Of a stretch of 64,000 nt of DNA, positions 1 to 63,444 are shown piece after piece (position 1 is the stretch's first letter; every line of letters starts with the position of its first letter). Source of the stretch: Podarcis melisellensis (lineage: Eukaryota); NCBI GenBank assembly GCA_964234715.1, contig OZ174282.1, one strand, 5' to 3'. A program made the translations under genes and the position numbers. A model generated the notes under the pieces. That model saw only the letters and a list, made by a program, of their open reading frames with translations, did not search any database and had not been told where the DNA came from.

Positions 1-124
1 TATTCTTTGTGGCCCTTTTGATACTTCATCTAGTGTAAACCTAGGCATCACTGTAACCTCCTCCCCTGTTGACCCCCGGTGACAATCAATGATGGTCCAA
101 TTAAAAGTAACATGCAATACTTAC

Positions 125-3100
125 GCCTAGTAAACCACCACCCTGAAATAAAAAGGAGGAAATCAATCAAAAAGGAGAAAAACAATCAACATCTCTTTTA
201 AGCAATGTTTCCTTAGTTTTAATGCCCTTGAATACCTTTGTGGGAGTATAGAAAATCAGGCACATTTCTGGCATAAACATCTCTTTCCCAGAAGTTTTTT
301 TTGTTTTTTGTGCAGTGAATGGCCATAGTAGGGAAAACGCAGCATTGCCATTCACAACCTACATCAGGTATCTTCAACATTTTTAAGACCCAGGACTCAC
401 TAAGTAGGTGATCAAAAATAAGATACCTAACAGGTTTTTGTTTTTTTGTATACCAAATAACTCCTAGAGCTGTTGAATTTCGTTGGACCTGATGACAGAG
501 CTTTGCAGCCAAGGAGTCTTGACGTTTCATTAGAACAGCATTTCTCAAAGCAACTTTGCAACTTCTACCATTGGGACTGCTTTGCATTTTGCAGCCATTA
601 CTACTCACCCATCACCTGTTATGATGCTACTGCAGGACAAACTACTCCTTCTATTAAAGCCAAAATCACATTTAATGTCTCCCGCTCTCTCTGTTTGTGT
701 GTGTTAAATACCTTCAGAGGTTGAAGGTATTTCTCTCTCTCTAATTAAAAGTAATATAAAATACTCACACTTAGTAAACCATTACTACGAACTAGAAAGA
801 AGGAAATCAGTATTTCCACTAAGGGACACTTCCATGATCTGATTGGCAAAATCTTGCAGGAAACATAAGCCCCTCCCCCAGTGAAGGATGTTGTGGATCA
901 TTAAGGCATGACATAGAGGATTTCCAATACTCACAGTTCCGCCAGTAAGTCCATCAGTAAGGCCCTAAAGAAGAGAAAGAAGATAAAGAAATAAGCAGGA
1001 AAGGCAAGGCCAACTCCCCCAGTGAAGGATGTTGTGGATCATTAAGGCATTACATAGGATTTTCAGTACTCACATTTCCAACAAGAAGGGCCTAAATAAG
1101 GTCTCTATCACAACTTATGAATAGTTGAACACATCAAAGACTGTCTGGAGAGGCTAGATTTCTACTACTCACACAGCAAATAATTATCATCTACTTGAAT
1201 GGAATCCTAGTATGGCTCGGTGGATCACTTCAGTTACAATAAAAAGCATCTAGGACCTGAGGGACACTTCTTAACTAAGTGACCAAATATAACATACTTT
1301 TTTTTTTTGTTTTTATGCAGAGTAATAGGGCTTTACTGTCTGTTCTGCATATGTCTCGCCTACATGGAATCTCTTCCCTATTTAGAAAGTATCATTGCCT
1401 GGACTTGAAGCTCTTCAAATGGCGGCCTGTTGCTGGAGAGACAACAACAGAAGCCCCAGATGATGCAATATGTTATTCTTTGTGGCCCTTTTGATACTTC
1501 ATCTGGTGTAAACCTAGGCATCACTGTAACCTCCTCCCCTGTTGACCCCCAGTGACAATCAATGATGGTCCAATTAAAAGTAACATGCAATACTCACGCC
1601 TAGTAAACCACCACCCTGAAATAAAAAGGAGCAATTCAATCAAAAAGGAGGAAAACAATCAACATCTCTTTTAAGCAATGTTTCCTTAGTTTTAATGCCC
1701 TTTAATACCTTTGTGGGAGTATAGAAAATCAGGCACACTTCTGGCATAAACATCTCTTTCCCAGAGGTTTTTTTGTTTTTTGTGCAGTGAATGGCCATAG
1801 TAGGGAAAACGCAGCATTGCGTGTCGAGGTCCCCAGGTCCACCCCAATAACTCACACATCACACAGAATTTTTGTTTAAGGTTTTTGGCATAATTTTGGC
1901 CACAACTTTATTAAAATACAAATTTGTGAGTGGTTGCTTAGGCATTGGTTGCGACTATCTGCCCCCACCATGGGGGACAGACTGACATTCTGCACGATGC
2001 GAAAGTCAGAATGGGGGAATACACTTGGGGGTTACGCGGAGCAGGGAACCTGCCCTCACCCCAAATGCAACCAGGAGCTCATTGCTATGGCCCGAGCCCC
2101 CTTGACAGAGTGGACAAGCAATAGTTAGCCCCCAATTCCTTTAACGGAATCCCTTGCAGCAGCAGCATTAGAGGGGCAGGCACAGCCTATCCATGCCCCT
2201 CAACCAACCAAACCATAAACCAATGCCTAACCGCAACCTTACAAGTTGTGATGATTTGCTATGCAGTAGGCAAAAACCAAATGGCCCCAGCCAATCAGCC
2301 AGATGGACAAAATTCCTACCAGGCCCCCGCTCCAAAGCAGACGACCCCATGACAGGCATAGCAAGGTCAAAGCGAACAACCCTATTCTAGGGAGGGAGGG
2401 ACGGGCAATCCGCTGCACGGGCGAAAAGAGGAAGCCCTGGCCTCGTGCAAGGAGTTTTAGCATTTCTGGCTGTCAATCAATAAATGGCAACATTAATTTC
2501 TTCCCAACAACAAGGGAAGCCCCAATCGCATCAGTGGCCAACGATCAGTTAGCCCGCCCCCAACTTTGGAGTGTCCTGGCGGCCCCCACCACAACACGTG
2601 CTCTCCATGAAGGAGAACACGCTTTGCATCAGGTATCTTCAACTTTTTTTAGACCCAGGACTCACTAACTAGGTGATCAAAAATAAGATACCTAACAGGC
2701 TGGGTTCTCCCCCCCCCCCCGCCTTTTTTTTTTTTTTTGTATAACGTAATATGCCTTCACACAACACTTTTGTTTACGTATTTGTTTTTGCAAGTATAAG
2801 GGCCATGTCATGCAGCCAGCATGCTTTTGCCATTTCAATCATGCAGCAATATTGTGGCACGAATCTCATCAGCCAATATTGAGGGACACTTCAATGAACT
2901 AATCAGCAATATCTTGCAGTAAGGACAAGGCCCCTCCCCCACTGAAGGATGTTGTGGATCATTAAGCATTACATAGAGGATTTCCAATACTCACACGTCT
3001 GCTACCAGCGCCCTAAACAAGATAAAGAAATATGTTATTCCTTCATGTTTCATGAACATGATAAACATAGTGAACTTTTTGATTATTTCACACTGCCAAA

Positions 3101-6100
3101 CTAGTCCAGGGCAACCTACTTCTTATGTTAAAGCCACAGGCACGTTTCATTTATCTTTGTGTGTTTGTGGGGTGTGTGTGTTTTAACTACCTTCAAGGAT
3201 CACAACCATGGTACTCTTATGAGTATGCAAGGGAGCAAGTAGGCTGTATAAAAGATCCTTTATCTTCTGTAAAGCTTGCCATCACTTTATTAGCATACAG
3301 AATTTTGAAGCATGAAGGTGGCGGCCTTCCCGGGCATTTTTCCAACAAAACCTATCAAATAACTCCTAGAGCTGTTGAATCTTGTTGAAACTGATGAAGA
3401 ACTTTGCAATAAAGAACATTTCTCAAAGCAACTTTGGAACTTGTACCTTTGGGACTGCTTTGCATTTTGCAGCCATTGCAACTCAGCCTTCACCTGTTCT
3501 GATGCTGCTCCAGGACAAACTACTCCTTATGTTAAAGCCACAGTCACATTTAATCTCTCTCTCACACACCATCTGTGTGTGTGTGTGTTAAATACCTTCA
3601 AAGATTAAAGATATAAAATCACTAATATACTAAATTCACACTTAGAAAACCACCACTGAAACAGAAAGGATGAAATCAATATTTCTACAACCAACCTTTC
3701 TTTTAAGCAATGTTTCCTTAGTTAAAAACCTTTAATACCCTTTTGGGAGTATTCAAAGTCAGGCACACATGTTTTCTGAAAATATTGTCAGTGGCACCAT
3801 CCTCCTTGATGCATCATCCCAGCGATCCTTATCTAACTCATATCACTTTTGCCTGTGGCCTCTGCAAGACTGCCTGATCCTAAAAGGCAGATTGTGATTG
3901 ACAGAAACGAGAGGCAACTGGCACCTGGGATAAACAGTTGTGGGCAATTACGACATGCAGTTGATTTGATTGCTCAATATTGTTGTTTTTAAAAAATAAT
4001 TAATGATATTCCCGCTAAAAGTGATGTGCAATACTTACGCCTAATAAACCACCAAGCTGAAACAGAAAGGAGGAAATTGATTTTGCTACAATCATCTCTT
4101 TTAAACAATTTATCATTAGTTAACAACCTTTAATACCCTTGTGGGAGTATAGAAAATTGGGCACACTTCTGGCATAAACATCTTCTCAGGAGTGTTCCCG
4201 TAACTCTTTTAGTAAAAGGCCATAACAGGAAAATGGTTGCAATGCCCTATATCATCTAAATCAAATATGTGTTTCAAATACAGTACCTTCAAGTACTACA
4301 ACCATGGTATTCAGGGGAAAACAGTTCTTTTCCCTACACTGTAGTCTCAGTGAAAGTTGCCCCAGCAGAAAAGGCATAAGGGTACAGCCTAGAAGAACAG
4401 TCAATCTCCCTTCGGCTTCAGCCAGGTCAACCCTAAACGTCCCATTACAGTCCTTAAAATTTGCCCACTATGGTACGATAAATCTTAGACCTATCAAAAA
4501 GACATTTTAAAATTCCAGAAATCAAAGCTTCTTATACTTTGTGTAAAGTATTTGTTTTTGTAAGTATTAGGGCCGTGTCCTGCAGCAAAGGTGCTTTAAC
4601 GAGTTTAACCATTTCAACTACACAGCAGTATTGTGGGAGGGATCTAATCCTTTCCTGCTTGGCAGGGGGTTGGACTCGATGGCCCTTGTGGTCTCTTCCA
4701 ACTCTATGATTCTATTATTCTAATCACCTAATACTGAGGGACACGTCAATGAACGAATTTTCAAAATCTTGCACCACCCTTGCCGTGAGCAGAGCCTGAG
4801 TACTTCTCTGTGGCTCTCGTCTGTCACTTCTGTGTGGCTTTTCTACAAACTAATGTGCAAAACCAGGCAATAAAAAACAAGGGTGCCTCATGGGAAGAAA
4901 CTACAGACCATTCAGACAATACAGAGAAGATTTGCAAATCACCACCACACTATATTTTAGGTTTGGCTTGCAGGGTTCCTATGTGGATCTGGTTGGCCAC
5001 TATGAGACCATAATGCTGGCCTGATATTTTTGTGTTCTTATAATCCTTATGATCTTGAAAGTCAAATGCTTGATCACCTCGCAGTATGGCCCCTCATCCT
5101 TACTGTAAAGGTAAAGGTAAAGGGACCCCTGAACATTAGGTCCAGTCGCAGACGATTCTGGGGTTGCGGTGCTCATCTCGCTTTACTGGCCAGAGCAGCA
5201 CACGGAAATGCCATTTACCTTCCCGCCGGAGCAATACCTATTTATCTACTTGCACTTTGACGTGCTTTCGAACTGCTAGGTTGGCAGGAGCAGGGACCGA
5301 GTAACGGGAGCTCACCCCCTCACGGGGATTTGAACCACCAACCTTCCGATCGGCAAGCCCTAGGCTCTGTGGTTTGGACCACAGCGTCACCCACGTCCCT
5401 CATCCTTACTGTAGAACATTTTAAAACTGCAGAAATCCATTTATGGGCACATATGCAAATTCTCATTTTATTCTATTTTTTCTTTTAATCACTTTATTAG
5501 ACCTGAAAACAATTTTGGAAATTAGAGGGTGTGGGTTGAACCAACATAGATCCTAGCCAGCATCCAGATGTTCCCAAGCACGCAGGAATCTTGGAAACCC
5601 TTTTATTTATCCACTGGAAACATGAAAATTACATCCATTTTTAGCTAAAGGGGATTTTTTTAGTCATTCAGTTCTCTCAATGCATAAAAGATTTGTAATA
5701 CTTACAAGCTGAGGAGCCTAAGTTTAAAAACAAAAACAGCAATTAGATTGATTGGTCTGCAAGCCTCTTAAGACAAATAAAATACCATCAGCCCCCCTCC
5801 ACCCCTTCAACAAAAGCTGATTCAAGTGGTGGCTCAGCTGGTCTGGTTGAATTTCTGGGACAAAATAATTTTTACCTTCTTTTAAACAAAGAATACAGCA
5901 AATCCATAAAAGAAATTATTAGAAGCAGCAGCAATATATAAAAAAGATTGAAGCCAGCAACAGTTCGCTCAAAAGCATTGCAAAATGGAGAGATCTCTGG
6001 GGCTCACTTAAAGATCTGAACTCAGAAAGCCAAAAAAATGTTCTGTTGGGAGGAAGTTCCACCACCAAGAAAGCTATGTGCCTAGAACCCACCAACCTAT

Positions 6101-6964
6101 TCTTTCTCAAGGTCAAGCCAATGAGAAGGCCTCTGAGACTGATTTTAGAGCCATTGGATCATAGGAAGCTGCCTTATACTGAGCCGTATCACTGCCCCAT
6201 ACATCTCAGTGTTGTCTACACTGACTGGTCGCAGCTCTCCAGGGTTTCAAACAGGAAATTTTCTCAGCTCATGTGTGTATGTGCATCAAACAAAACCGAG
6301 ATATTGAATTCATATATGCAGAACATTTCAGCTTCTGCCTTCAGGAGGCTTGAAACATTTTGCTATATGAATTCAGTTTCTCTATTTTGTTAGCACAAAG
6401 AAGGATGAAACACTAGACTTGGAGGCTAAACTTCTCTGTATAAAGTTCCTTATGTGTGAAAAACACATTTTGTCACTATAGATGCAATCCCATGCATACT
6501 ACATGTTAATACATCCTATTAAACCTAATGGGAGCTACTTCCTATTAAACAAAACAAAACAGGCTTGTGCTGCCATTGTTATCCTTTGTATTCAGGAAGC
6601 TATAGTTTCTATGCCAGCTCCTTCCATTTTTCCATGGTGTAGAATCCTAAAAGGAAGTGAATTTCCCTCATTTTTATCCAAATGGAAAACATTTACAATT
6701 AAATTGAGCCCTTAAGTTTAATTGTAGGTTTTAGATCCCATGCGTAGAATAGCCCCTAAATGCAGGGAGTTTTCATACAATCTTGCCTCAAGGAGCATTT
6801 ATGTCCTACAAAAACATGCAGTTTCAGCTCACTGAATATCTAGCTAAGCAGTATTGAAATATTCTACATGGCTCCCTTAAGTGCAAAAACAGACTTACCG
6901 AGATGCTCCCATCTGGACAAAGGAGAAAGACAAGAAGAGCAGTGGTCACAACCTGGAGATGCAT
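125..6964 (-). CDS. Gene B (3' part outside the window): secreted Gly/Leu-rich protein with GGLLG microexons
   Basis: 6899-6964 MHLQVVTTALLVFLLCPDGSIS (signal peptide, ends TCG|GTAAGT); 5706-5717 APQL; 4039-4056 LGGLLG; 2995-3012 GAGSRR; 1598-1615 GGGLLG; 1074-1091 ALLVGN; 935-964 GLTDGLTGGT; 125-142 GGGLLG. All phase 0 with AG acceptors and GTRAGT donors. No stop exon found in the window. Confidence 0.8.
1822..2596 (-). mobile_element. Putative solo LTR inserted in a gene B intron
   Basis: About 775 bp absent from the paralogous repeat unit; starts TGTCG and ends ACAACA; minus-strand AATAAA near 1907-1912. No clean TSD seen. Confidence 0.45.
4652..4721 (+). mobile_element. CR1-type 3' end fragment
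   Basis: GGGTTGGACTCGATGGCCCTTGTGGTCTCTTCCAACTCTATGATTCTA, the typical CR1 tail. Confidence 0.65.
5108..5396 (-). mobile_element. Sauria SINE (internally deleted) with TSD
   Basis: (ACCTTT)n tail on the minus strand, conserved core, and 17-bp direct repeat CCCTCATCCTTACTGTA at 5091-5107 and 5397-5413. Confidence 0.85.
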
Positions 6965-7033
6965 CTTGGCTTTGCGTTGGTGTCTTTCAGGAGTGAAGTC
7001 ACCAAGGTGAAGAATGAGCAGTTTTACCTGCTG

Positions 7034-7041
7034 TATTTATA
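7034..7041 (-). promoter_or_regulatory. TATA box (TATAAATA) of gene B
   Basis: Consensus TATA box about 70 nt upstream of the ATG at 6964 (context GCCAAGATG). Confidence 0.7.
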
Positions 7042-10000
7042 CTATAATTTTGTCCTCAATTTTCAAGCCTGGTTGACCAAATGTAATACCTCTATTGTCA
7101 AGGGAACCTATGACTTTTGTCAATAAGGAAAGGTCAATTCATCATAGCTATCATCACATGGAAAGTAGTGGTTGGTTCCAAACACCAGGGGCCAACTTGG
7201 CAACAAAGAATAGGCGGCATTATTCTTCCTAACTTGGGTGTTAAAATGGCCCAAATTGACCTTTTCTAACTATGTGCAATGAGGGATGTGCCAGAACCTC
7301 TTTGTGACATGGATAATGCCTACATTTCTGAGTATAGTTGAGGAGACCCTTATGAAGATGGAATGAATTTCTGAGGTGGCAATTCTTAAGCAAATTCAAA
7401 GAATAAGGTGGTCTACAAAGCAGTGGGGCAGCCTGGTACACTTGCCCTGGGCCTGCCAGACTTACGCTGTCATGCCAATAACACCTTGTTCCTCCCAGAC
7501 AACCAAGGACTCCCGCCCCAGGTTTTAGACGAGCTCTGCATGAGCCTGTCCCACAGAGTTCAGCAAGTTGCTTAGATATTACTACCTTTACAATTCCAGT
7601 ATTTAATATGTGCAAATGTTTGAAATTCACTACGTTAAATCCCAATCCGAAACAAGGTCGTAAATTTCAAAGTGTAGCCCAGTGGGGCTGAGTCAGAGTT
7701 TTTGGTTCCTATCCTAACCTGCACATCATATCAGCGAGTCAAGGACTGGTTTTATTTAGCCTAAGGATCTTTCGGCATAAATGGGGGATGTCTGCAGTTG
7801 AGTTGAATGTGTATTTGATGCTATTTATATTCCCACTTAAGTAGCACCGTCCACTTGACATCCACTTCAAATGACTTCTATCCTGCTATTTTTTCCCTTT
7901 TAAACATTGATGAATATCACTGATTCAATGCTTGGAGCCAGGGTGCTGTCATCCATTAGAGTTGGCTAGCAGGAATGGTGGTCCCTAGTCATTGCCTTAG
8001 CTGCATGTATACCCACACTGAATTTGGGGAAGTTGAGTTCAAATAATTAAGAATGTTTCAGATCAGACTTGCAAGAGAGTAGAGTTGTAGCCCACTTACT
8101 ATCGTATGTGTCAATTCCACAAGTTGATATTGTTTAAACACTGCTGCAAAAGCAATTTTGATGTGATACACATAACTTCATTATTTATTTGTGCAGTGTT
8201 TTATCAGTCCATTTACAAACCACCACTAAAAAAAAACCCCCAAAATTATGTGTTGTGGCCAATATTAGTCATACTCAGAGTAGACCCACTGAAATTAACT
8301 GACATGGATAATTTAGGTCAATTCATTTAAATGTGTCTACTCTGAGTAAAACCTAGATGGCAATTACCCTTTTTCCCCAAGTATAAACTGTAGTAACAAT
8401 ATTCTTTTCCATCCTTTTTCTATCCCTTGTGCCGTCAGTTTCCTTTCAACAAAAGCAAAAAGTTTCATCAATGAGTAAAAACTGAAGTATGAAGTGTAAT
8501 CTCCACTAAATGTAACTCTCCTAAAAGATTAGACCACATTATAGTGATTCTCAAAAATTTATAGCCACAATATAGTGATTCTGTTTCATGCATTCACACT
8601 TTGCTACACAGTTAGGCCCCTATTTGGGCTTCACAGTCTGGGATATGATAGTGTTGGTGGCAGGGGTCTTACTACACTAGAAAAACAAAACAGCTGGTAA
8701 CTTGTGTTCTGGACGCAGCATGGGATAGATACTATTTTTTTGTTCTAGGTCTGTTCTAGAGTCACAAGTCAGTATGTTGCAACTTTCCTATGATTTTACA
8801 TCACAGAACACCCTCTACCCATCACCTGCAAACCAGCCATTCACCATCTTACGCTTGTCCTTTACCTGACCTTTCTACATATGTTTATGCATACTAATCA
8901 GAACATAACCTGCCAGAACAGCAAAGGGCAAGTAAATGTGACAATCTGGATATTGTCAGTTTTTTATCAGTTGCCTGGGTTATTTTTGGCTATCTGCTGT
9001 TGCCTATGATAGAACAATCTTTCCAGGAACTTGGTGTCTCAGTAGATCCCATTCTTCTGCTTCAGCAATAAGTTTTAGCAGCATTTATTGCAACTGATAA
9101 CAGGCCTTTGATCCAGCTTCTGGCTCCTGAGAAATGGAAGTATGTTCTTTTTTCTATAAACAAAAACAAAACACCTGACCTACACAACCAAGGCACATTG
9201 CAGATTAGCATTTGAATGTCAGAACAAGTTGTCCGGATATCACCTGAGAATGCCTTCTTTCGTGATCAAAGAAGGCTATGTGCCAATGACAGGGTTCCCC
9301 TGCCCCTGCAGTTCATGTGCCTGTGCTCCCTGCATGACAGACACTTTCAACAAGTATCCATAAGCCCTCCAGCTCATACCTATAGGCTACAGAAAGTAGC
9401 ACACACTTTGCATTCAGGTCCTAAATTCAGTTTCCAACATCTCCAGGTAAGGCTGGGAAAAACTCCTATATGAAACCCTAAAGAGCTACCATCAACCAGA
9501 ATATACGGTATTGATAGACCAATGGAATACAACTTCCCATGTTCCTACTGAAGCTTCGAGTTCAAACTGATTCACTTATTATCCACCTGACTGCCTTGTC
9601 ACATACCAGTGCCAGTACACACCAGTGCCAGTACAGGTAAGAATAATATTGCAGTTGGCTATGCCAGGTTTGTCTCTGCTTATCTTTCCGCTTTAGCTAC
9701 AGCAGTTCATTTATTTAAGATAACGTCTCACTTTTACGCATGTGATTTATACCTCTCTGCCTCTCAGTTACAGATCTTTCTTTCATTCCATTTTCCTGTC
9801 TTGATATAAGATGGCTGTCTTCCTTTGTCTTTCTTTCCATTTTCTCATGCTAAGCATTTCTAAAGCTGGTAAGTTGCCTTAAGTAGGCACTCAAGCTGTT
9901 CCACCTTCTTTTTCTTTATCGTGTGAGGGTTTTTTGGGGTGAAGGACCTCTGCCCTACCCTACATGCATTCATTATAAACCCTGAAGGCAGCCTATCATG

Positions 10001-16099: not shown

Positions 16100-16604
16100 T
16101 GTGATGTAATAACATATTTTTTATTTTACGGCAAAGCAACCAGTGTTCACGAGTCTTCCCTTACCCTGGGTTACAGTAAAGACACCCAAAATCAACAGAA
16201 AAAACTACAATTAGCAGACCCCGGTTAAAAGGAAGTTGCGGTTCACATTATGAAACCTGATTGGTAATAAAGTTATGAAATTTGTAGAAGGAAAGCGTAG
16301 CGGCAGGCACTGAAGATTGTTCTCAGCTGATCCAGCTTGCCAATCTGAAAACGGCAATAAAAAACGAGTGAAATAAGGTTGGGTATTTCCTACATGTGCA
16401 TACATAAATTTCACCTTGTTTGCTATTTAATGACGCCAGCACAAGAACACCACATCAAGTGTTAACATAACAGGTGAGGCAGCTGCACTACACATTTGGA
16501 GCCTACGAGATGAATAAGATGCTTTTCTTTCACAGAGACTCAGGCTTAATTCCTCAACATCCTGACTAGGGAATGGGACTTGATGAACATGGCAGGAATT
16601 TCTT
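16100..16604 (-). other. Putative non-coding terminal exon of gene A with polyadenylation signal
   Basis: Acceptor TCTTGTTTCCTCAG ending at 16605; AATAAA on the minus strand at 16120-16125, followed by U-rich sequence. The 3' end is approximate. Confidence 0.45.
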
Positions 16605-17840: not shown

Positions 17841-17881
17841 CTGAGTGTATTTCCCAGGTTGAATGGTCAGGTTTATGGTGC
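17841..17881 (-). CDS. Gene A stop-containing exon (GCA CCA TAA plus 32 nt of 3' UTR)
   Basis: TTTTGTTTTTCCAG acceptor and CAG|GTGAGT donor; phase-0 reading gives A-P-stop (TAA at 17875-17873). Confidence 0.7.
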
Positions 17882-32800: not shown

Positions 32801-35800
32801 TTGTTAGAGTGCAATTGGTTCGAATCTCCGCAATGCAGTGAGCGCCCGTTGCTCTGTCCCAGCTCCTGCCAACCTAGCAGTTCGAAAGCACGCCAGTGCA
32901 AGTAGATAAATAGGTACTGCTGCGGCAGGAAAGTAAACGGTGTTTCCGTGCGCTCTGGTTTCCATCACGGTGTTCCGTTGCACCAGAAGCGGTTTAGTCA
33001 TGCTGGCCACATGACCCAGAAAGCTGTCTGTGGACAAATGCCAGGTCCTTCGGCTTGAAAGTGAGATGAGCGCCGCAACCCCATAGTCGCCTTTGACTGG
33101 ACCTAACTGTCCAGGGATCCTTTAACTTTACCTTTTACCTATAAGCACATATAACTTGGGAGCTGCATTGAAATCAAGGGGACTGGGATATAAGTGTCAA
33201 CTTAATGCAGAAATCACAATGCTAGGTACATTTTAGAAAAAAATAAAAACAAAACATTTTACCCAATTTGGGCTGTCGTCAGTCTACAAAGAAAGAAAGA
33301 AAGAAAGAAGTTAATTGATATTGTTGCTCTCCACATCAAAGATGAAACTGTTTAAGTGTACAGATATTTGAGCACACTCTTAGTTATTGGAAGCAACCCC
33401 CAATAAAATTAAAAGAGCTTATTATGGTCATAGAGCTGAGCCAGAATTCCTCAGAAGATTCTTTTTCCAAGAACATTTTTGAGATTTATTTTTTTCTCAC
33501 CCACCCAAGCTCAGAAAAGTAGGCCATTTTGCAGAATTTTCTGCACACACTTTATCAAGTGTTAAGAGGCCATCTGCACACAACTCTAATTTAGCATCTA
33601 AGAAAGGCCTACAAAAGTAAGTCCAACAACTTCAATCTCACCCTATTGTATTTATTTTATTGTTTCGCCTGTTACTAGCCTGATACGATCTTTGCGTATT
33701 CTCTTTAGTATGTGCTCTTTTACCTTCCAAAATTACAGTTTCAGGGGGGGTTTGTTTTAAAAAAGTGGGGCACAATTAACTCGACCAATATACAGTGATA
33801 CCTCAGGTTAAGTACTTAATTCGTTCAGAAGGTCCGTACTTAACCTGAAACTGTTCTTAATTTGAAGCACCACTTTAGCTAATGGGGCCTCCTGCTGCCG
33901 CCGCGCCGTCGGAGCACAATTTCTGTTCTCATCCTGAAGCAAAGTTCTTAACCTGAAGCACTATTTCAGGGTTAGCGGAGTCTGTAACCTGAAGCGTGTG
34001 TAACCTGAAGCATATGTAACCCGAGGTACCAGTGTAGTGGCAATATGTTGCATACAGTGTCTTTTAAAACTACAGAATTTGTATTTTTGCTGTGTTGTTG
34101 CCTTTCAATCTTCTGTTTGAGGGACTCTCAAACCAGTCCAGTCCAGTTTAAAGAAAAAGTACAGTGGTGCCTCGCAAGACGAAATTAATTCGTTCCCGAG
34201 TTGCTTCGTCTTGTGTTTTTTTCGTTTTGCGGAGTGCGGATTCCCTGGGTATCACCGGCTTTAAGAAAAAGGAAGCAAACCCGCAAGACGTTTTCGCCTT
34301 GCGAAGCAAGCCCATAGGGAAAATCGTCTTGCGAAGCAACTCCAGAAACGAAAAACCCTTTCGTCTTGCGCGTTTTTCATCTAGCGAGGCATTCGTCTTG
34401 CGAGGTACCACTGTACTTCTAAAAGGAAAAACAGATATTTTGAAGTAGCCCACAGACATCAGACTGAGCAGACACACAGGCCACCTGGCCACAATCTTCC
34501 CAAGATTGTGATCTCTAATTTCCAACTCTACAAATAAATTAGAGAAATGATCTCTAATTTCCAACTGTACAAATAAATTATGCAGGTCTGTATCATCTTT
34601 TTTTGTGATATGTAAGTAGCAACCTTAGCACAAGGCATTGTACCCAGGATTATACATGCTTAACTTAGATCCAGTAATTGAAGAGGGAAAGAAAGGACAC
34701 AATAATTCTCTGTGTGTGTCCATGTGCATGAATATGAAAGGGTTGGATCATAAGCTCACATATTCAAGGTGCTGGCCCAAAGAAAGGACAAGGAGAAGAG
34801 AATACAATCAAAGAAACGAAACCTGTCATACCTGTTTCCTTCTGCCGAACCAACCAAACTACAAGAAGGAAGGGGGGGGGGAATAGATGTTATTTTTTTC
34901 CTATTGGCTTCTGCATGAGAAATTAAACTGATACAACCTTTGCACATTTCCCCCTGCATGTGCACACTTTCTCCTCCAAAACATACAGTTTCACAACCAG
35001 AAAAAAACGAGACTTATCACAGTCACTTGGCTTAAACTGCTGAAATGAAGAAACCTGAAGCTGGGAATGGGGGGGGGGGAGGCAGGGATGGATTTGTGAG
35101 TGGAAGGATGGTGAGCGCAGTTATACTCAGAACCGGGAGGAGCCAGAAGTGGAGGCAGAACAGTGCTTACCGGACCTCCTGCCAATGGCATTGCTGTGTC
35201 TTACCAGGAGGGAGAGGGTTGAGGTGGCAGGGAGGTTGGCAGGAGCTCCAGGTTTGCTCAGCTGGTTAGTTTGCATCACACAGTTCTCCCCTCTCCCTTG
35301 CAGTCTCCAAGTAAGGTGCAAGTACACTGGCAATAAGAGGTCAGGTAAGTACCGTATTTTTTGCTCTATAAGACTCACTTTTTCCCTCCTAAAAAGTAAG
35401 GGGAAATGTGTGTGCGTCTTATGGAGCGAATGCAGGCTGTGCAGCTATCCCAGAAGCCAGAACAGAAAGAGGGATTGCTGCTTTCACTGCGCAGCGATCC
35501 CTCTTGCTGTTCTGGCTTCTGAGATTCAGAATATTTTTTTTCTTGTTTTCCTCCTCCAAAAACTAGGTGCGTCTTGTGGTCTGGTGCGTCTTATAGAGCA
35601 AAAAATATGGTACCCTTGCCTCTCTGCACAGACCACTACTGCTCAGAACAAATTCTGAGATGTGGAATTACAGCCGTACCTTGCAAGTCTGTTCGACTTT
35701 CAAAACATTCGGAAACCGAAGTGTGGCTTCTGATTGGCTGCAGGAAGCTCCTGCAGCCAATCGGAAGCTGTGGAAGCCCCATCGGACATTCAGCTTCCCA

Positions 35801-38800: not shown

Positions 38801-41800
38801 TACCTTTCACAATTGAGAGAAATGAGACTTCTGTCGCTCATCACCACCCGTGGTCAGGGCCAAAACCAAAATAAAATAGACATTATTCATTCCTCTTGGC
38901 TTCCATGTGATAAATGGCACAGAATCTCAGGCTCATAAACACATATCCCCAGCAAGAATTGCCTGAGCATCTGAGGGACGTAGTCCCAAACAAGACCGGA
39001 TAGCTGAGCTGGTTAGAGCGTGGTGCTGAAAGTGCCAAGGTTGCAAGTTTGATCCCCGTATGGGACAGCATTTCAGGGGATTGGATGATCCTAGGGGTCT
39101 CTTCCAGCTCTACAATTCTATGATTCTAAGACATGATATTAATTGCACAAATGCAATTAATGCCTGTGGCCTTGATCCCGCTGAATGTTTAAGCAGGCCC
39201 TGAGTAAAAAGCAATGGTTTGTGTACACTTATGTTCCATCTTCAGCTAACCCCTTTTTCACTAGATACTGAGATTATACAAAATAGCCAAAGAGAGTAAA
39301 AAGCTGCTTCCATATACTTACTTGTTTTCTGCTGCCTCCAAATATTCCTGCAAGCTAGAAGGGAAAGGGACATCAGTTATTCAAAGAGACTGGATCTTCT
39401 TGTCCAGCTCCAGCAAAAGAAGAAGCTGAATTCAGGCTCCTCCTGAAAGGAGCCAGTTGGCTCAATGGCCAGAGCTCTCGTGAGCGCTATATGTGTACAA
39501 ATCCAACACCTGAACTGGCCAGACAGCGTTGGTTCACAGCACCAATTTCCACATGAATATCACATGGTTCCACATTCACCTAGCAAGTGAATGCAGAGGC
39601 GAGGGCAGGGGGTCAGTTAGCCCATTTACAATGTCAGCGGAAGGGTCCTGGGGTCAGCTAGATCCCAGATGTAAATGCATTTCTTCATGTTTGTTCCAAG
39701 AACCCGTCCCAAAATCGCACCCTTGCAAGAACAATAGCACAAAACTGTGACGATCATTAAAACAGTTAATTCCACAGCCCAGCAAAAAGGAAGTCACAAC
39801 TAAGACCAAAGGACTCTTAGCTATTCGTATATAGAGCTTTTTCAATGGGGATTCGTCACAAATTATTGTTGGGTTGTACCCGTGGGTCTTTTATGCGTGT
39901 ACCTACTCCATCTCTTGCCCCAAAATAGACCCCTAGTCCTCATACTTCCCTCTTTCCTTTGATGCTCTGTGGGTGATATCCTGTACTCAGTTTCCTGGGA
40001 ACAAGGTCCATAGAATTCAACAGGTCTTACATCTGAATAGGCACGCACAGGATTGTGCATTGGGACGTATGTTTAGCCTAGAATCCTATGGACACTGACC
40101 TGAGTATAAGCTCCACTGAAAACAATGGGACTTAAGCTGTGTGCAAACTATACCTTTAAAGCACACTGAACACACCATAGTTTGCCGTTCACAGAAATGC
40201 AATTCCCAGCAAGGCCTTAACAAAGTACAGTGCTCAGAATTCCTTGAGGAAAAGAAGGTGCTTTGAATGGGCTTTAAAGGTACAGTGTGCAGACAGCCTT
40301 GCTTCTGAGGTTATGCATAGGACTGCATTGTTAGAGCACAATTCTAAGCATGGGAGTTGAATTAGAATCAAGGGGACCACAATCTTAGTGCCAGCTTGAT
40401 ACAGAAATGACAACCTTAATTGAACAAAATGTATTTTACCAGTCCTGGGCTTGACTGCTTCGAAGAACTCTACAAAAAAGGGGGGAAATGCAAATGTTCT
40501 TTGATCTTGTTTGTTTCAATATGAGAAAAGAACCTGCCTAGGCACCCAGACCCCTTAGCACACACTGATTCTTAAGCACACAATGGGCTTTTTAGTTTCA
40601 AGTTTAGGTCGTAGAACTGGGACAGAATATATCAGAAGATGCATTTTCTGAAAATATGTCTGAGGTGCATTATTTTCTCCCCCTTCCCCCTTGAAAAAAG
40701 TGTCAGCCACCCCCCCCCCAAAAAAAATATTCCATTTGCACACAGCTCCAGAAGCAGCGGCCAAATCTAAGGAAGGCTGCAAGTCCTCCAGCCACATCAA
40801 GATTCCCATTCTATTATTTTTCATTTAATGTTTAGTCCCTTACCAGCCCGATAAAGTCTTAAGACATTTTACTTATATGCGCAATTTTTCCTCCCCAAGT
40901 TACAGCTTTCACAATTGGAGAAATGAGATTTATACTCACTTGTCTTCTGCCGCCAAACTCGTTCTACAAATAATAGCAGTATTAGTAGTAGTAGTAGTCA
41001 TGTAAAAATTCATCATTTGTTTCTGTTGGCTTCACAAGAGAAATGAGAAGCTCAGGCTCATACACACACCCCCCCAGAAAGAATTGCTTGTGGACTCTAA
41101 GGGCCTTGGCCAGAGACTGGACAAAATACTAATTGCACAAATTCACTTGAAGCCCATGGTCTTTTCTTATGTAAATAACAGCTCCAGGGAATCCTGAACA
41201 GCAGTACTAAAAGGGGATGGTTTCCATTCACTTATATTCCATTTCAACTGGGAAACACTGGCCTGTGAGCGCTCCAGTTGGAGAACAGCCTTTACCAAAG
41301 GTGTCATGAGTATTGAAGATGCTCAAAAACAGGACGAAAGGGAGAAACGTGCTAAGAGGAAGGCACGCTTGGCAAACCTTCACCATGATCAACTCCCAAC
41401 CGGAAACCTATACAGTGGTACCTCAGGTTAAGTACTTAATTCGTTCTGGAGGTCCATTCTTAACCTGAAACTGTTCTTAACCTGAAGCACCACTTCAGCT
41501 AATGGGGCCTCTTGCTGCTTCCGCGTCGCCGGAGCACAATTTCTGTTCTCATCCTGAAGCAAAGTTCTTAACCTGAAGCACTATTTCTGGGTTAGAAACA
41601 TACCTGAAGCGTATGTAACCTGAAGAGTATGTAACCTGAGGTACCACTGTATCCTTACTGTGGAAGGACATGTAGATCCAGGATTGGCCTCCACAGTCAC
41701 TTACGGACTCACTTTTAAAACCATGTTTATGGAAGACAATCTTACTCGGCTACGAGTGATTGCAGAAGAAGAAGAAGAAGGAGGAGGAGGAGGAGGAGGA

Positions 41801-48159: not shown

Positions 48160-50950
48160 TTTTCAGTGGTGGCTCCCTGTCTCAGAATGCCCTCCCTGTT
48201 CAAATATTATTCAAAAAATTTTTTTGCATAAACGTGCATCCTCAACATTACAAAATTAAGGCTGCATAAACGTACATCCCCAACACCACTCAAGAACTCT
48301 GGAAACTGTAATTTACCCTCCACAGAGCTACAATTCCCAGAACCCAGAACATACTTCAATTCCCAAGATTTGGGGGTTGTGTGAGCTTTAAATTTGCTTT
48401 ATATGCATGGTGTATAAGCAATCTAAGAGAACAGAATGAAGACAGAGACCACCTCAGACCTTGCTCCAGCTGCACCCTCTAATAAACACCCTCCCCTGAA
48501 TAAGGTACTACCAATTTATATATTGAGCTATGTAGCTTAATACCCCATAGCACAGTCACAATAACCCGAAGAAAACTTTCTCATACTTACTGGAGGAGGA
48601 GGCTGAGGCTGAGGTGGGGGAGGTACATTTGGGCCCGAATAAGTAACCTGTAAAAGATCAAGAGAGAAAGGTGGTTCAGTCCTTTTTGTTGCCCATCTCA
48701 CATCCTCACAACAAAACCCAAAATCAGTGTGGGTAAGCTTGCTGCTGAGATTTGCAGGAAATTCCATCCCTATCTATAGCCCTTGGCTGCCTCCACGTGG
48801 AAATTTATTTGCACATAAACTGATCGTTCCAGGAAAAGCCCTTTCCAGGAGGAAAATAAAAGCTTAGGCAGGTCCAGTGCTTTTGATAGGATCCTGTAAG
48901 CTGATAATCCCTGCCTGGGGTGTGAAGAGGTGGAATGCCTTCTTTTAAAATCAAAATATAAAATGAATTTTATTTTTCATGAAAACCCACAAGCGGGGCA
49001 TGAGTGCAACACTTCCAGCCCACTCTTCTCCCCAGCATGAGGATGCTTCACTCTGTGCATAGCTGAAGCATGGAATTTGCTAGCACAGAATGTAGTGCTG
49101 GTTAGAAGCTTGGATGGCTTTAAAAGGGGAGTTAGACAAATTCGTGGAGGGCCAAGGCTTCTGTGACTACTAGCCACAAGGGCTGTGTACTGCCTTCAGT
49201 TGTTGGGCATCACAAGTATGGAGAGTTGCTGTTGTACTCAATGCGCTGCTTTGGAGCTTCTCAAAGACATCTGATCTGCCACTGTGAGAACAGGATGCTG
49301 GAGTAGATGGGTCTTTGGCTGATCAAGTAAGACCCTGGAAGAAGATGGCTAATTCTAGCCCAGAACAGGACTGGTCCTGTTAAACAAGTGAGGGTGTTTT
49401 GTCGCAGATCCTACTCGCGTAGCATCCTTTTTGAGAGAAAGCATAACAAAAGCAGATGGACAAAATGTGTCGTACTTACGGAGGCACCAAAACCAGGATT
49501 CCACTGTGATAACAAAACAATTGAAACGATGCTGTTAGTTTCCATGAATTTAATTTGAAATAGACTCTGGGACATAAGCCATTCTTTGCAAGCAGGATTC
49601 ACAGTACGATCCTATTCATTCCTATTTGGAGTCAAAAGTAACTTCCATTGAGTTCAATGGGACTTACGCCCTGGTAAGTGCACATAGGAGTTCTGCCTTA
49701 GTTACTCTCTTATATCCGAGTACGAAAAGGTTTGTTGTGTTCGCTGGAAGCACTGTATGTGGACTCAAGCCCTGTCCGCAATCGGGAGACATTAACAAAC
49801 GGGAAAACAAGGTTTTAACCCAAAGCTCCCCACTTCTATCTGAAGAAGTGTGCATGCACACGAAAGCTCATACCAAGAACTAACTTAGTTGGTCTTTAAG
49901 GTGCTATTGGAAGGATTTTTTTTTTGTTTTGACTATGGCAGACCAACACGGCTACCTATCTGTAACTCCCCACTTCAGACAGTCACCTTCCATGTTGCAA
50001 GGAGTGGGGACGAAATTCAGCTCAGTTGTATTTAAAAGCAAACCATCCTAATCTGCCCTTTCCAAAACAATGCGCAAACTGAAATGCAGTCACCATTCCA
50101 AATTACCAGCCAGGGAATGTGTACAAACATGCATGCACAATACCAGGGTAAAGTGTGAGCATTAGTGAAAATAGCATACAGAATGTATTACATTAAGGTG
50201 TACTGCCTTGCAGAAATGTGTCTATTAGGGGAAATTGCATGCAAACATGTAAAATCTAGGAGGAATTCGTAACGAAATGCTGATGAATTTTCAGAATTAC
50301 ATCTTTCTTTAATGCAATCTACTTGGAGAACTGAGCTAAAGAGAAATGAGAAACTGGGATAAGCCAACTAACACAGCAATTGCGGGGGGGGGTGTGTGTG
50401 CAGAGTTAGCACACTGGCCCCCACTGCTTCTTCTTACAAGCAAAATGCCCTCTCAAAACTCTCTGGTTTTTATAAACAGTGCCTTGACTTCCATCACTGA
50501 AGGAAGGCACAGGTATCTACTAATTATTTTGGCAAACTGTTTGTTCGCTATGTATTTGGACACTTCTTAAGCTACCATAACTAAATCTTGCATGATGGTT
50601 CCTGAGATCAAGGAGCAGGTTTTCATCTATGTTTGCACCAGATGACATTTTGAATCAAGAGGGCAAACTGAACCTTTAAAAACTGTCCTGATTTTAACCA
50701 CTAGTTTCATTTTTTTATTTTTTTATAATTCCCGAGCAATGCTGGATAAAGGGCTTCTGGTCAATAAATAACATGACACTTTTGATTCACATTGGTTTAG
50801 GTCCCCCACTCCACCTCCCCCCACTAGCATCCAATTAAAAGCTGATGCTGCATTTCTCCTAGAAGTCCGTTTCCATCTCACCTGTGCATCCGTTTCTCTT
50901 GCACAAAGTGCAGAGATTAAAAGAACGGCGGCTACAACCGGGAGCTTCAT
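17873..50950 (-). CDS. Gene A: secreted Pro/Gln/Gly/Tyr-rich protein encoded by 42 coding exons, mostly phase-0 microexons (~468 aa if all are included)
   Basis: Exons read manually; each internal exon has a pyrimidine tract+AG, a GT donor and a length divisible by 3. In transcript order: 50882-50950 MKLPVVAAVLLISALCARETDAQ; 49480-49503 WNPGFGAS; 48591-48647 VTYSGPNVPPPPQPQPPPP; 47959-47982 GPYDGQNS; 47369-47416 and 45359-45406 AYLGVQAQPWQPQPPP; 44523-44555 QVGLYVGSPGP; 43182-43262 QGSGYSGSPGARPYPPPPPPQNGYPGS; 42465-42494 DDGGQSVDAW; 42132-42158 WEELINSVE; 40940-40963 NEFGGRRQ; 40440-40469 SSSKQSSPGL; 39322-39354 LAGIFGGSRKQ; 38315-38341 SSSNRNQGW; 36743-36760 LQDFTP; 33263-33283 TDDSPNW; 31340-31363 MKRLFEMP; 29950-29973 MELVERVK; 28913-28942 EAFSRKNSQN; 27023-27049 NNRYQWPFQ; 25943-25969 SNAGSYQQQ; 20 Pro-rich exons between 25165 and 19849; 17841-17881 AP-stop. 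No in-frame stop occurs before the last coding exon. Confidence 0.85.
19849..25165 (-). CDS. Gene A Pro-rich microexon array (20 exons, 30-51 nt)
   Basis: 25115-25165 PPQQPQQNPGAAVYLYA; 24990-25028 PAPPPPNQGNGQP; 24879-24911 GSRPYPGYGPP; 24583-24615 PPPPYGPYGPP; 24465-24494 PPPPSGNDQP; 23779-23811 SSVSFGIYGQP; 23658-23693 PPPPPNQGNGQP; 23541-23573 GPQPYPAYGQP; 23241-23273 PPPQYGGYGPP; 23123-23155 PPPPPSGNDQP; 21971-22003 SSVSVGIYGPQ; 21533-21565 DPQPYQGYGQP; 21248-21277 PSPAGENQQP; 21128-21160 PLLPYGGYGPP; 21010-21042 PPPPPSGNDQP; 20309-20341 TSVSPGINAPP; 20195-20224 and 20081-20110 PPPPPGGSQP; 19966-19995 PPPPPGGSPS; 19849-19881 PPPPPFESQEP. Donors are mostly GTGAGTAT/GTAAGTAT; acceptors TTTCAG/TTCCAG/TTTTAG-like. 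Confidence 0.87.
21596..21818. mobile_element. Tc1/mariner-pogo-type MITE
   Basis: TA-CAGTGGTACCTCTGGTTACGAA ... TTCGTAACCAGAGTACCAC inverted termini; right end damaged. Confidence 0.75.
22447..22670. mobile_element. Tc1/mariner-pogo-type MITE (diverged)
   Basis: TACAGAGGAACCTC...AAGGTTCCACTATA; absent from the paralogous intron copies at ~20560 and ~24255. Confidence 0.65.
26217..26458. mobile_element. Tc1/mariner-pogo-type MITE (same family as 33793 and 41413)
   Basis: Internal TAACCTGAAGC repeats; ends GAGGTACCACTG-TA. Confidence 0.75.
26808..26936 (+). mobile_element. Penelope-like retroelement terminal fragment
   Basis: CTGAAGAAGTGTGCATGCACACGAAAGCTCATACC...CAACACGGCTACC; a near-identical copy lies at 49838-49966. 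Family call from memory. Confidence 0.55.
27240..27920 (+). mobile_element. Degraded L2 LINE 3' region
   Basis: Frameshifted homology to the reverse complement of 62100-62700; ends in AATAAATAA. Confidence 0.6.
29815..29861. repeat. (CA)n microsatellite
   Basis: Direct observation. Confidence 0.95.
30509..31026 (+). mobile_element. Solo LTR in a gene A intron
   Basis: TGTG...CACA termini, 5-bp TSD TGGTT (30504-30508 and 31027-31031), internal CCAAT, TATAAAA (30601) and AATAAA (~30876). Confidence 0.8.
32812..33140 (+). mobile_element. Sauria SINE (5' truncated)
   Basis: Core CTCCTGCCAACCTAGCAGTTCGAAAGCA...GTAGATAAATAGGTAC and TTTACCT tail. Confidence 0.85.
33793..34034. mobile_element. Tc1/mariner-pogo-type MITE
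   Basis: TA-flanked; CAGTGATACCTCAGGTTA...TAACCCGAGGTACCAGTG. Confidence 0.8.
34162..34413. mobile_element. Tc1/mariner-pogo-type MITE
   Basis: TA TSD; TIRs CAGTGGTGCCTCGCAAGACGAA / TTCGTCTTGCGAGGTACCACTG. Confidence 0.85.
35352..35610. mobile_element. Tc1/mariner-type MITE
   Basis: TA TSD; TIRs CCGTATTTTTTGCTCTATAAGAC / GTCTTATAGAGCAAAAAATATGG. Confidence 0.8.
35671..35897. mobile_element. Tc1/mariner-pogo-type MITE
   Basis: TA-CAGCCGTACCTTG...CAAGGCACGACTG-TA; a related copy lies at ~53874-54101. Confidence 0.75.
37275..37513 (-). mobile_element. tRNA-derived MIR/CORE-like squamate SINE
   Basis: Close paralogue at 42768-43012; tRNA-like head (GTGGTTAAGAG...GGTTC) and (TTC)n tail on the minus strand. 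Confidence 0.7.
38996..39128 (+). mobile_element. tRNA-derived SINE with CR1-like tail
   Basis: A box TAGCTGAGCTGGTTAGAGC, B box GTTTGATCCC, then CTTCCAGCTCTACAATTCTATGATTCTA. Confidence 0.65.
41248..41820 (+). mobile_element. RTE-clade LINE 3' fragment interrupted by a MITE (41413-41649)
   Basis: Degenerate RTE C-terminal coding sequence (WETLACERSSWR..., then a Cys/His motif ending RIGLHSHLRTH), (GAA)n/(GGA)n tail; nested TA-flanked CAGTGGTACCTC...GAGGTACCACTG element. Confidence 0.7.
42768..43012 (-). mobile_element. tRNA-derived MIR/CORE-like squamate SINE
   Basis: Paralogue of 37275-37513. Confidence 0.7.
44981..45028. repeat. (TTA)n microsatellite at an L2-like tail
   Basis: Direct observation; the adjacent 45030-45165 resembles the reverse complement of 15530-15675. 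Confidence 0.85.
45343..47690. repeat. Direct duplication (~45343-45690 and ~47353-47690) carrying gene A exons 5 and 6
   Basis: Highly similar sequence at ~2010-bp offset; the two exons differ by one synonymous base (CTT/CTC). Confidence 0.9.
48080..48157. repeat. (GA)n microsatellite
   Basis: Direct observation. Confidence 0.95.
49838..49966 (+). mobile_element. Penelope-like retroelement terminal fragment
   Basis: Near-identical to 26808-26936. Confidence 0.55.
50882..50950 (-). CDS. Gene A exon 1: signal peptide MKLPVVAAVLLISALCARETDAQ
   Basis: Basic N-terminus, hydrophobic core and small-residue cleavage region; AAAATG start context; ends CAG|GTGAGA (phase 0). Confidence 0.88.
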
Positions 50951-51022
50951 TTTAGCCCGGGATCAGGCTTCCGTCCCGGGTGCGAAATCGTTCAAAGGTG
51001 TGAACTGTGGCTCGGAAGCTGT

Positions 51023-51030
51023 TATTTATT
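51023..51030 (-). promoter_or_regulatory. TATA-like box (AATAAATA) of gene A
   Basis: About 73 nt upstream of the ATG, the same spacing as the TATAAATA of gene B. Confidence 0.5.
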
Positions 51031-51345
51031 GACCCATCACCACAAGCCACACTGCCTAAACTTAAAGGGTCCATTGAGAGTGTCGCCAAATTACCTTATC
51101 TGGAAGGAAAGGTCAGAGGAACTGATTCATCACAGGGACACTCTTGCGGAAAGGACACCCTGCTTCCAGAGCCAACTGCTACGTGGACTCTTAAATGCCC
51201 CTGTAATGGAATATTAATCTCTCTTCAACAACCACATTTGGATCCCTTAATATTTTTACTTCATTATGTGGGACAGATACTTTTTGTTGGTTTTCAAGAC
51301 CATGTTTAATGCATTTTAACCACAGCATAGTTAATACCTGCAAAA

Positions 51346-51731
51346 GGGATGCAGGTGGCGTTGTGGTGTAAACCACGGAGCCTCTTGGGCTTGCCAATCA
51401 GAAGGTCGGTGGTTCAAATCCCTGAGAGGGGGTGAGCTGCCGCTGTTCTGTCCCAGCTCCTACCAATCTAGCAGTTCAAAAGCATGCCAGTGCAAATAGA
51501 TAAATAGGTACCACTGTGGCAGGAAGGAAAACAGTGTTTCCATGCACTCTGGTTTCTGTCACGGTGTTCCATTGCACCAGAAGTGGCTTAGTCATGTTGG
51601 CCACGTGACCCAGAAAGCTGTCTGTGGACAAACGCTGGCTCCCTTGGCCTGAAGCGAGGTGGGCGCTGCACCCCATAGTCGCCTTTGACTGGATTTAACC
51701 ATGCAGGGGTCATTTACTTTTACCTTACCTA
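51346..51731 (+). mobile_element. Sauria SINE (near full length)
   Basis: tRNA-like head GGTGGCGTTGTGGTGTAAACC...GGTTCAAATCC, core and TTTACCTTACCT tail. Confidence 0.85.
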
Positions 51732-52883: not shown

Positions 52884-53240
52884 AGGTAAAAAAGGTAAAG
52901 GACCCCTGGACGGTTAAGTCCAGTCAAAGGTGACTGGGGCTGGGTGCTCATCTCACTTTCAGGCCGAGGGAGCCGGTGTTTGTCTGCAGACAGCTTTCCA
53001 GGTCATGTGGCCAGCATGACTAAATCGCTTCTGGCACAATGAAACAATGTGATGGAAACCAGAGTGCATGGAAACACCATTTACCTTCCCGCCGGAGTGG
53101 TACCTATTTACCTACTTGCACTGGTTTGTGCTTTCGAAATGCTAGGTTGGCAGGAGCTGGGACAGAGCAACGGGAGCTCAATCCATTGTGGGGATTCGAA
53201 CTGCTGACCTTCTGATCGGCAAGCCCAAGAGGCACAGCAA
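52884..53240 (-). mobile_element. Sauria SINE
   Basis: Reverse-complement tail GGTAAAAAAGGTAAAGG and conserved core. Confidence 0.85.
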
Positions 53241-54569: not shown

Positions 54570-54770
54570 GTGGTGCATGGAAATGCCATTTACCTTCCCG
54601 CTGCAGCAGTACCTGTTTATCTACTTGCACTGGTGTGCTTTTGAGCTGCTAGGTTGGCAGGAGCTGGGACAGAGCAACGGGAGCTCACCCCATTGCAGGG
54701 ATTTGAACCGCCGACCTGACTGGCAAGTCCCAGAAGCTCAGTGGTTTAGACCACAGCACCACCCCTCTGC
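54570..54770 (-). mobile_element. Sauria SINE fragment
   Basis: Core and head similar to 5200-5396. Confidence 0.8.
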
Positions 54771-55435: not shown

Positions 55436-55720
55436 ATGGGGTGAGCTCCTGTTGCTCTGTCGCAGCCTAGCAGTTCGAAAGCACACCAGTGCAAGTAGAT
55501 AAATAGGTACCACTGCGGCGGGAAGGTAAACAACCTTTCTGTGCGCTCTGCTTTCCATCACAGTGTCCCGTTGCGCCAGAAGCCGTTTACCCATGCTGGC
55601 CACAACTGGAAAGCTGTCTGTGGACAAAAGCCGGCTCCCTCGGCCTAAAAGCGAGATGAGTGCTGCAACCCCATAGTCGCCTTTGACTGGACATAACTAT
55701 CCAGGGGTCCTTTACCTTTA
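55436..55720 (+). mobile_element. Sauria SINE fragment
   Basis: Core and CCTTTACCTTTA tail. Confidence 0.8.
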
Positions 55721-63375: not shown

Positions 63376-63444
63376 CAAAAAGAGCAGGTGATGTCACAAG
63401 GCTGTCAGTCCTGAACTGCAGGGAAGAGAGACCCACTCGGGGAA

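Follow-up and report, generated by a model that had tools for sequence, protein, structure and literature searches.

A probable microexon gene for a Gly/Leu-rich, putatively secreted protein in Podarcis melisellensis

Organization of gene B

The window analyzed here is a stretch of 64 kb (64,000 nucleotides, no N) from Podarcis melisellensis (assembly GCA_964234715.1, contig OZ174282.1), which carries two candidate genes assembled from very short exons. Gene A spans 16.1-51.0 kb. Gene B, the subject of this work, is read on the minus strand close to the start of the window, and all its positions below refer to that strand. An earlier note on this DNA had proposed for gene B a TATA box and a first exon with a signal peptide, followed by seven short units of 4-10 amino acids, each forming an exon of its own. 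Every one of these elements is present on the minus strand in the proposed order, with seven symmetric candidate exons of 12-30 nucleotides (nt) following exon 1.

The upstream region contains sequence blocks in common with gene A and its orthologues (7064-7143), namely GATGAAT with TGACCTTTCCTT at 7125-7143, CAAT at 7094-7097 and GGCTTG at 7064-7069. The TATA box TATAAATA (7034-7041) is located 70 nt 5′ of the ATG and corresponds in alignment to the ATAAA boxes of gene A and of the Sceloporus and Pantherophis loci described below. An initiator-like CTCATTC lies between the TATA box and the ATG, at approximately 7012-7018. Exon 1 (6899-7015) would consist of about 51 nt of 5′ untranslated region (UTR), counted from a predicted start, and 66 coding nt (6899-6964) beginning with the ATG at 6962-6964. 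The coding part encodes MHLQVVTTALLVFLLCPDGSIS. By eye, this was recognized as a signal peptide of 22 amino acids with an 11-residue hydrophobic core, VVTTALLVFLL, and small residues at positions -3 and -1 (S-I-S). Its end coincides exactly with the exon 1 donor, TCG/GTAAGT, which is in phase 0.

Exon 2 (E2, 5706-5717) has only 12 nt, encodes APQL and reads ttag/GCTCCTCAGCTT/gtaagtat with its borders. It is followed by E3 (4039-4056, 18 nt, LGGLLG), E4 (2995-3012, 18 nt, GAGSRR, with a dibasic RR), E5 (1598-1615, 18 nt, GGGLLG), E6 (1074-1091, 18 nt, ALLVGN), E7 (935-964, 30 nt, GLTDGLTGGT) and E8 (125-142, 18 nt, GGGLLG). E6 has a weaker pyrimidine tract and precedes a mini-intron of 109 nt. 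All exons have a length that is a multiple of three, contain no stop codon, are in phase 0 and are bordered by YAG acceptors and GTRAGT donors. The seven visible introns, all in phase 0, measure 1181, 1649, 1026, 1379, 506, 109 and 792 nt. The donor is extended to GTRAGTAT in six of the eight exons (E2-E5, E7 and E8); those of E1 and E6 read GTAAGTCT and GTGAGTAC, respectively. GTRAGTAT complements the 5′ end of U1 small nuclear RNA (snRNA) across eight intron positions. Among the 44 residues encoded by E2-E8 there are 18 Gly and 12 Leu, with one Asp, one Pro, one Gln and a single RR.

Occurrence of the microexon pattern

The frequency of such exons was assessed with a strict pattern: a YAG acceptor with at least 70% pyrimidine in the 20 nt upstream, then 12-30 nt in a multiple of three without a stop codon, then GTRAGT. 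On the minus strand, six matches were found in 1-7041 and 24 in the whole window, that is in genes A and B together; there were none on the plus strand of the whole 64 kb. In 300 dinucleotide shuffles the mean number of matches was 0.05 and the maximum was two. E6 misses the pattern solely on the pyrimidine filter, with a value of 0.5. When candidates of any length with strong sites were considered in the gene B region, all but two were open multiples of three. The first of these, of 14 nt (6899-6912), lies inside exon 1 and shares the donor of that exon. The other is a decayed cassette, psi2, described below, which is listed twice owing to its two possible acceptors. The microexon pattern is strand-specific and far above chance.

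The matches are not independent, because E3, E5 and E8 copy one cassette and E4, E6 and E7 another. As most exons thus derive from just two cassette families, the match count overstates independence, which would suit an artefact of chance or of local amplification of a non-coding repeat with splice-like ends. Such an origin appears extremely improbable. The cassettes all lie on the same strand and in frame, behind a TATA promoter and a signal exon homologous to those of a gene conserved in three squamate lineages, and even the diverged exons (GAGSRR, ALLVGN and GLTDGLTGGT) all stay open multiples of three. Nor are the cassettes a dispersed repeat, since the rest of the window contains none of them. 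Scanning 1-7500 for Rfam families and tandem repeats gave no relevant match.

Relationship to gene A and to other squamates

Gene A encodes a Pro/Gln/Gly/Tyr-rich sequence. Its exon 1 (50882-50950, minus strand) reads MKLPVVAAVLLISALCARETDAQ, and its promoter and signal-peptide exon, which together occupy 50882-51131 (minus strand), align with those of gene B. The window holds just two instances of GATGAAT-N(0-12)-TGACCTTTCCTT, one 5′ of each gene, where zero would be expected by chance.

Orthologous loci in other species were reached through the neighbouring gene C8orf90, within 10 kb of its annotated protein; gene B itself lies about 52 kb from this anchor, and for Sceloporus undulatus and Pantherophis guttatus the comparison covers the promoter and exon 1 of gene A. 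In S. undulatus, both the promoter of gene A and its signal-peptide exon are situated 2.5 kb upstream of C8orf90 in a head-to-head orientation, and the exon reads MELPFVMVILMASVICTGAQ/gt (7457-7700 of the fetched locus, minus strand). The same head-to-head arrangement is found in P. guttatus, at 9 kb upstream of C8orf90, where the exon reads MKLSFAGAALLISVLCTLAQ/gt (882-1120 of the fetched locus, minus strand). No such module was seen within 10 kb of C8orf90 in the gecko Heteronotia, which says little, or in the turtle Malaclemys, where a bHLH gene occupies that side.

Aligning gene B with the three gene A sequences shows no change among the four in TGACCTTTC, CAAT, GGCTTG, the ATAAA box, the ATG or the GT donor. 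Gene B has features by which a family with gene A is proposed here: shared TGACCTTTC, CAAT, GGCTTG and TATA elements and a homologous signal exon. Its identity to the individual gene A sequences is 47-53%, and these are 58-61% identical among themselves. As gene B stands at about the same distance from each of the three, the duplication that gave rise to A and B is probably old; either it would predate the split of the sampled lineages or gene B evolves faster. In spite of such a deep divergence, the ATG, the hydrophobic core, the donor and the promoter blocks have all been kept in gene B, and this is the strongest argument for its being functional.

Further likenesses are found in the short exons. 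GTRAGTAT donors are also present on the central exons of gene A, and a GAATAAC element lies about 25 nt upstream of the acceptor both in those exons and in E4 of gene B. Two gene A exons (39322-39354 and 40940-40963, minus strand) end with ...FGGSRKQ and ...FGGRRQ. The E4 codons GGT-AGC-AGA and their flanks resemble these ...GGSRKQ and ...GGRRQ exons, with GGY-AGC-AGA (G-S-R) in common. In peptide precursors, Gly followed by a dibasic pair, as seen at the ends of the two gene A exons, is the classical signal for cleavage and amidation. Comparison of the bodies of the two genes revealed no DNA similarity beyond a microsatellite.

Gene B had been described earlier as having the design of gene A with different chemistry, and this description agrees with our data: promoters and first exons are homologous and the compositions differ. 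The two genes have in common the promoter blocks, the signal exon, the GTRAGTAT donors, the phase-0 microexons, GAATAAC and a G-S-R-R/K site; they differ in their chemistry and in the introns, which are longer in gene B with the exception of the 109-nt mini-intron.

Duplication and decay of cassettes

The exons of gene B fall into two cassette families, class I (GGLLG) comprising E3, E5 and E8, and class II comprising E4, E6 and E7. Members of class II share the downstream intron sequence GTGAGTATTGGAAATCCTCTATGTAATGC...CCACAACATCCTTCA at 81-89% identity, whereas their exons have diverged. A recent segmental duplicate occupies 1-434 (minus strand) and reaches the window edge: 1-348 is 97% identical to 1474-1820, and 362-434 is 96% identical to 2627-2699. 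E8 is located within this duplicate, in a 97%-identical copy of the E5 cassette. Older cassette duplicates in gene B are 74-88% identical. The earlier claim that the gene grows by duplication of whole exon-plus-intron units is therefore borne out by the sequence itself, which holds the 97% and 96% copies together with the older ones. The older copy of the recently duplicated segment also contains a GC-rich insert of about 800 nt (1821-2626), which is absent from the 97% copy at 1-434; no second copy of this insert was found within the window.

Cassette loss is likewise visible in the sequence, in the form of two dead class I cassettes, neither of which was in the exon list of the earlier note. 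The first, psi1 (3640-3655, minus strand), has 16 nt and a weak donor, GTGAAT; its inclusion would cause a frameshift leading to a TAG in E4. The second, psi2 (769-784, minus strand), also has 16 nt and possesses a strong acceptor; use of the upstream AG at 792-793 extends it to 769-791. TAA is the first codon in frame, and with the upstream AG the reading becomes FVVMVY*. Its donor is GTGAGT (GTGAGTAT), and a strong pyrimidine tract is retained. This cassette is a candidate for a stop exon or for a poison exon.

The 3′ end of the coding region

The recent duplicate carrying E8 runs off the window, and it is possible that gene B continues past position 1. The reading frame may instead stop after E7, with E8 then being non-coding, since psi2 combines good splice sites with an in-frame TAA, and gene A carries its stop in a short exon. 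In gene A this appears to be a 41-nt exon (17841-17881, minus strand; GCA CCA TAA), which is followed by a 3′UTR intron of about 1.5 kb and a last exon with AATAAA at 16120-16125.

On this basis gene B could be real and short, with psi2 serving as the true stop exon and everything beyond it as 3′UTR. The precursor would then have about 60 amino acids (the 22-residue signal peptide and 38 residues), cleavage at the RR site would give two Gly/Leu-rich peptides, and E8 and anything further would be non-coding or a neutral recent duplicate. The pyrimidine tract, AG, GTGAGTAT donor and immediate in-frame TAA of psi2 all fit such a gene, as does the organization of gene A, with its 3′UTR intron and AATAAA after the stop. 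In addition, some 110 nt downstream of psi2 the sequence holds ATTAAA and, after it, the GT-rich stretch TGTGATTTTGG, and E8 belongs to a copy recent enough to be 97% identical. However, psi2 is clearly a decayed GGLLG cassette with a sister, psi1, whose donor is weak, and this fits a dead exon; moreover, the E8 cassette is formed as well as that of E5. We consider the short gene unlikely, although a real contender.

Evidence for and against expression

Database searches with gene B were restricted to exon 1, the only exon long enough to search. Its open reading frame (ORF; 6827-6964, minus strand) was compared by HMMER with 1.84 billion representative proteins, and the only hit was an unrelated 1513-residue repeat protein; a word-indexed protein search with the same ORF gave no candidate. 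The control, exon 1 of gene A, was also blank in the word-indexed search. The negative results for exon 1 consequently carry little weight and do not argue against expression. Exact look-ups of the ORFs neighbouring gene B, aimed past position 1, found no match on record.

Several other observations have to be set with these searches on the side against a functional gene B encoding the protein as read. In Sceloporus and Pantherophis, the annotations call no gene where the orthologous exon 1 of gene A is situated. The gene B array contains two dead cassettes, and one of them, psi2, could truncate the protein. The 3′ end of the gene is either outside the window or undefined. Finally, comparison of exon and flank identity between paralogous cassettes revealed no significant purifying selection on the exons. 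As to the missing gene A annotation, either the family is expressed in unsampled tissues or microexon genes are overlooked by annotation pipelines, as happens with those of schistosomes (PMC10526429).

These points could mean that gene B, as a paralogue of gene A, is in decay or silent: the promoter and the signal exon would survive and the array would yield no protein. The dead cassettes, the exon identity not significantly exceeding that of the flanks, and the lack of a transcript or annotated protein among the sequence searches made would all be expected of such a relic. Yet all eight exons are open, in frame and provided with consensus splice sites, and the promoter blocks have been kept at a divergence from gene A as deep as that between squamate lineages. 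The searches, as judged from the gene A control, could hardly have detected the gene even if it were expressed. We therefore regard silencing as improbable, but not negligible. Were it correct, gene B would provide a tidy case of a decaying paralogue.

In the reading we prefer, gene B is genuine and belongs to a tandem family of squamates, represented here by genes A and B, in which TATA promoters drive secreted low-complexity proteins encoded by phase-0 microexons; on the sequence features described, the chances for and against it look evenly balanced. Roughly the same even prospect applies to gene B being expressed and encoding the protein as read. Overall, gene B is probably a real gene from a squamate family for which neither of the two relatives checked has an annotation.

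A putative mode of expression and processing

If gene B is an active gene, transcription would start about 26 nt downstream of the first TATA base. The conserved TGACCTTTC is what we take to be a nuclear-receptor-type half-site, and it hints at putative hormone-dependent or tissue-restricted expression. Exon 1 would provide a cleavable signal peptide of 22 residues, the predicted cleavage point coinciding with the exon 1/exon 2 junction, and each of the later 12-30-nt exons would add 4-10 residues. Recognition of such tiny exons is plausible through the GTRAGT donors matching U1 snRNA, with most acceptors having a strong pyrimidine tract. Because every exon is in phase 0 at both ends, the gain, loss or skipping of a cassette causes no frameshift, and unequal recombination between symmetric units could add, delete and let decay exon-plus-intron cassettes with the frame intact.

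The product is predicted to be a secreted, flexible, hydrophobic, Gly/Leu-rich protein. At the conserved G-S-R-R/K site a proprotein convertase would probably cut it into smaller hydrophobic Gly/Leu-rich peptides. GLLGG-type sequences also occur in hydrophobic elastomeric proteins. Splicing, secretion and processing we infer from the features of the DNA; a surface-active, antimicrobial or matrix role for the gene B product is suggested by its composition.

Expression of gene B would make it a useful system for studying the recognition of tiny exons, with its 109-nt mini-intron, its conserved elements in the branch region and its extended donors matching U1. The lengthening of a protein by the birth and death of cassettes could likewise be followed in it, and it could lead to lizard and snake matrix components, or secreted Gly/Leu-rich peptides, that are new.

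Other features of the window

A single-exon ORF on the plus strand at 59422-60306 is the C8orf90 homologue, with 107 matches ranging from amphibians to mammals; its best named relatives are those of Sceloporus (77%), Hemicordylus (84%, over part of the length) and Heteronotia (78%). In Sceloporus and Pantherophis a bHLH gene is found beyond C8orf90, on its downstream side, and in the turtle it is on the other side. About 2 kb upstream of the C8orf90 ORF there is a block (57024-57316) conserved with Sceloporus, Pantherophis and Heteronotia, which may be the first exon or the promoter of C8orf90.

A tRNA-derived short interspersed element (SINE), presumably of squamate type, is present in six copies with 76-85% identity (5107-5400, 32816-33135, 51345-51544, 52891-53229, 54576-54764 and 55438-55720); one copy lies inside intron 2 of gene B. 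At 62663-63436 (minus strand) an ORF of 257 codons is reverse-transcriptase-like (...YADDTQLY...) and is probably a fragment of a long interspersed element.

Comparison with known systems

Genes A and B apparently belong to an undescribed squamate family: our literature search found no paper describing this family or the neighbours of C8orf90. Three known systems resemble gene B in part.

The first is the family of secretory calcium-binding phosphoproteins (SCPPs), to which caseins and enamel proteins belong. In SCPP genes exon 1 is non-coding, and their exon 2 encodes the signal peptide and the first two mature residues (PMC4373244); introns of the coding region are in phase 0 (PMC9122587), and an S-x-E (SxE) motif phosphorylated by Fam20C is encoded soon after the signal peptide (PMC4373244, PMC9122587). 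The casein genes CSN1S1 and CSN1S2 contain many small in-frame exons (down to 24 bp), which have multiplied by exon duplication and of which the skipping is tolerated (PMC12470106). Genes A and B could be divergent members of this family. Like the SCPP and casein genes, they would specify secreted disordered proteins of vertebrates from a fragmented coding region of small, duplicated phase-0 exons (PMC9122587, PMC12470106); all seven introns of gene B are in phase 0, and gene A is Pro/Gln-rich, with a stop codon located in its short penultimate exon. On the other hand, the signal peptide of gene B is encoded by exon 1, just past a TATA box that occupies a conserved position in gene A as well as in two other squamates, so that exon 1 is not non-coding. 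No S-x-E was found within E1-E8, the exons inside the window. The composition is Gly/Leu and neither acidic nor Pro/Gln-rich, the exons are smaller (12-30 nt), and, on the side covered by the window, the sole identifiable neighbour is the C8orf90 homologue, not SPARCL1 or an SCPP gene. Membership of gene B in the SCPP family was rejected on gene structure, the absence of a visible SxE and composition; for the two genes together, a divergent SCPP origin is very unlikely. If expressed, they would represent a vertebrate family built almost wholly from 12-33-nt exons and lying outside SCPP.

The second resemblance is one of composition, and no homology is claimed. The frog antimicrobial peptide leptoglycin has the sequence GLLGGLLGPLLGGGGGGGGGLL (PMC10876013), and GLLGGLLG occurs in the alpha4 peptide derived from SPLUNC1 (PMC6456746). 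Both have in common with gene B a GLLGG-type motif and the dominance of Gly and Leu. They differ in being products of ordinary genes with few exons.

The third system, a parallel in design, is the microexon genes (MEGs) of Schistosoma, which consist of a signal-peptide exon and 10-20 very short exons, mostly multiples of three (6-81 bp), with introns of 0.1-5 kb between them (PMC10526429), and which encode secreted, hydrophobic, disordered proteins (PMC10526429). Gene B has this type of architecture, with exons of 12-30 nt, introns of 109-1649 nt and an N-terminal signal peptide. The flatworm genes have no sequence relationship to it, and the likeness is limited to design; the biology of MEGs is defined by alternative splicing of their microexons. 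We put forward, as a tentative proposal with somewhat less than an even chance of being right, that genes A and B represent a squamate-specific microexon family. Its members would combine a TATA box and a nuclear-receptor-type half-site with a signal exon and symmetric exons of 12-33 nt, and their products would be processed and secreted, Pro/Gln/Tyr-rich in the case of A and Gly/Leu-rich in the case of B. Such a family would be independent of SCPP and would form a vertebrate counterpart of the schistosome MEGs.

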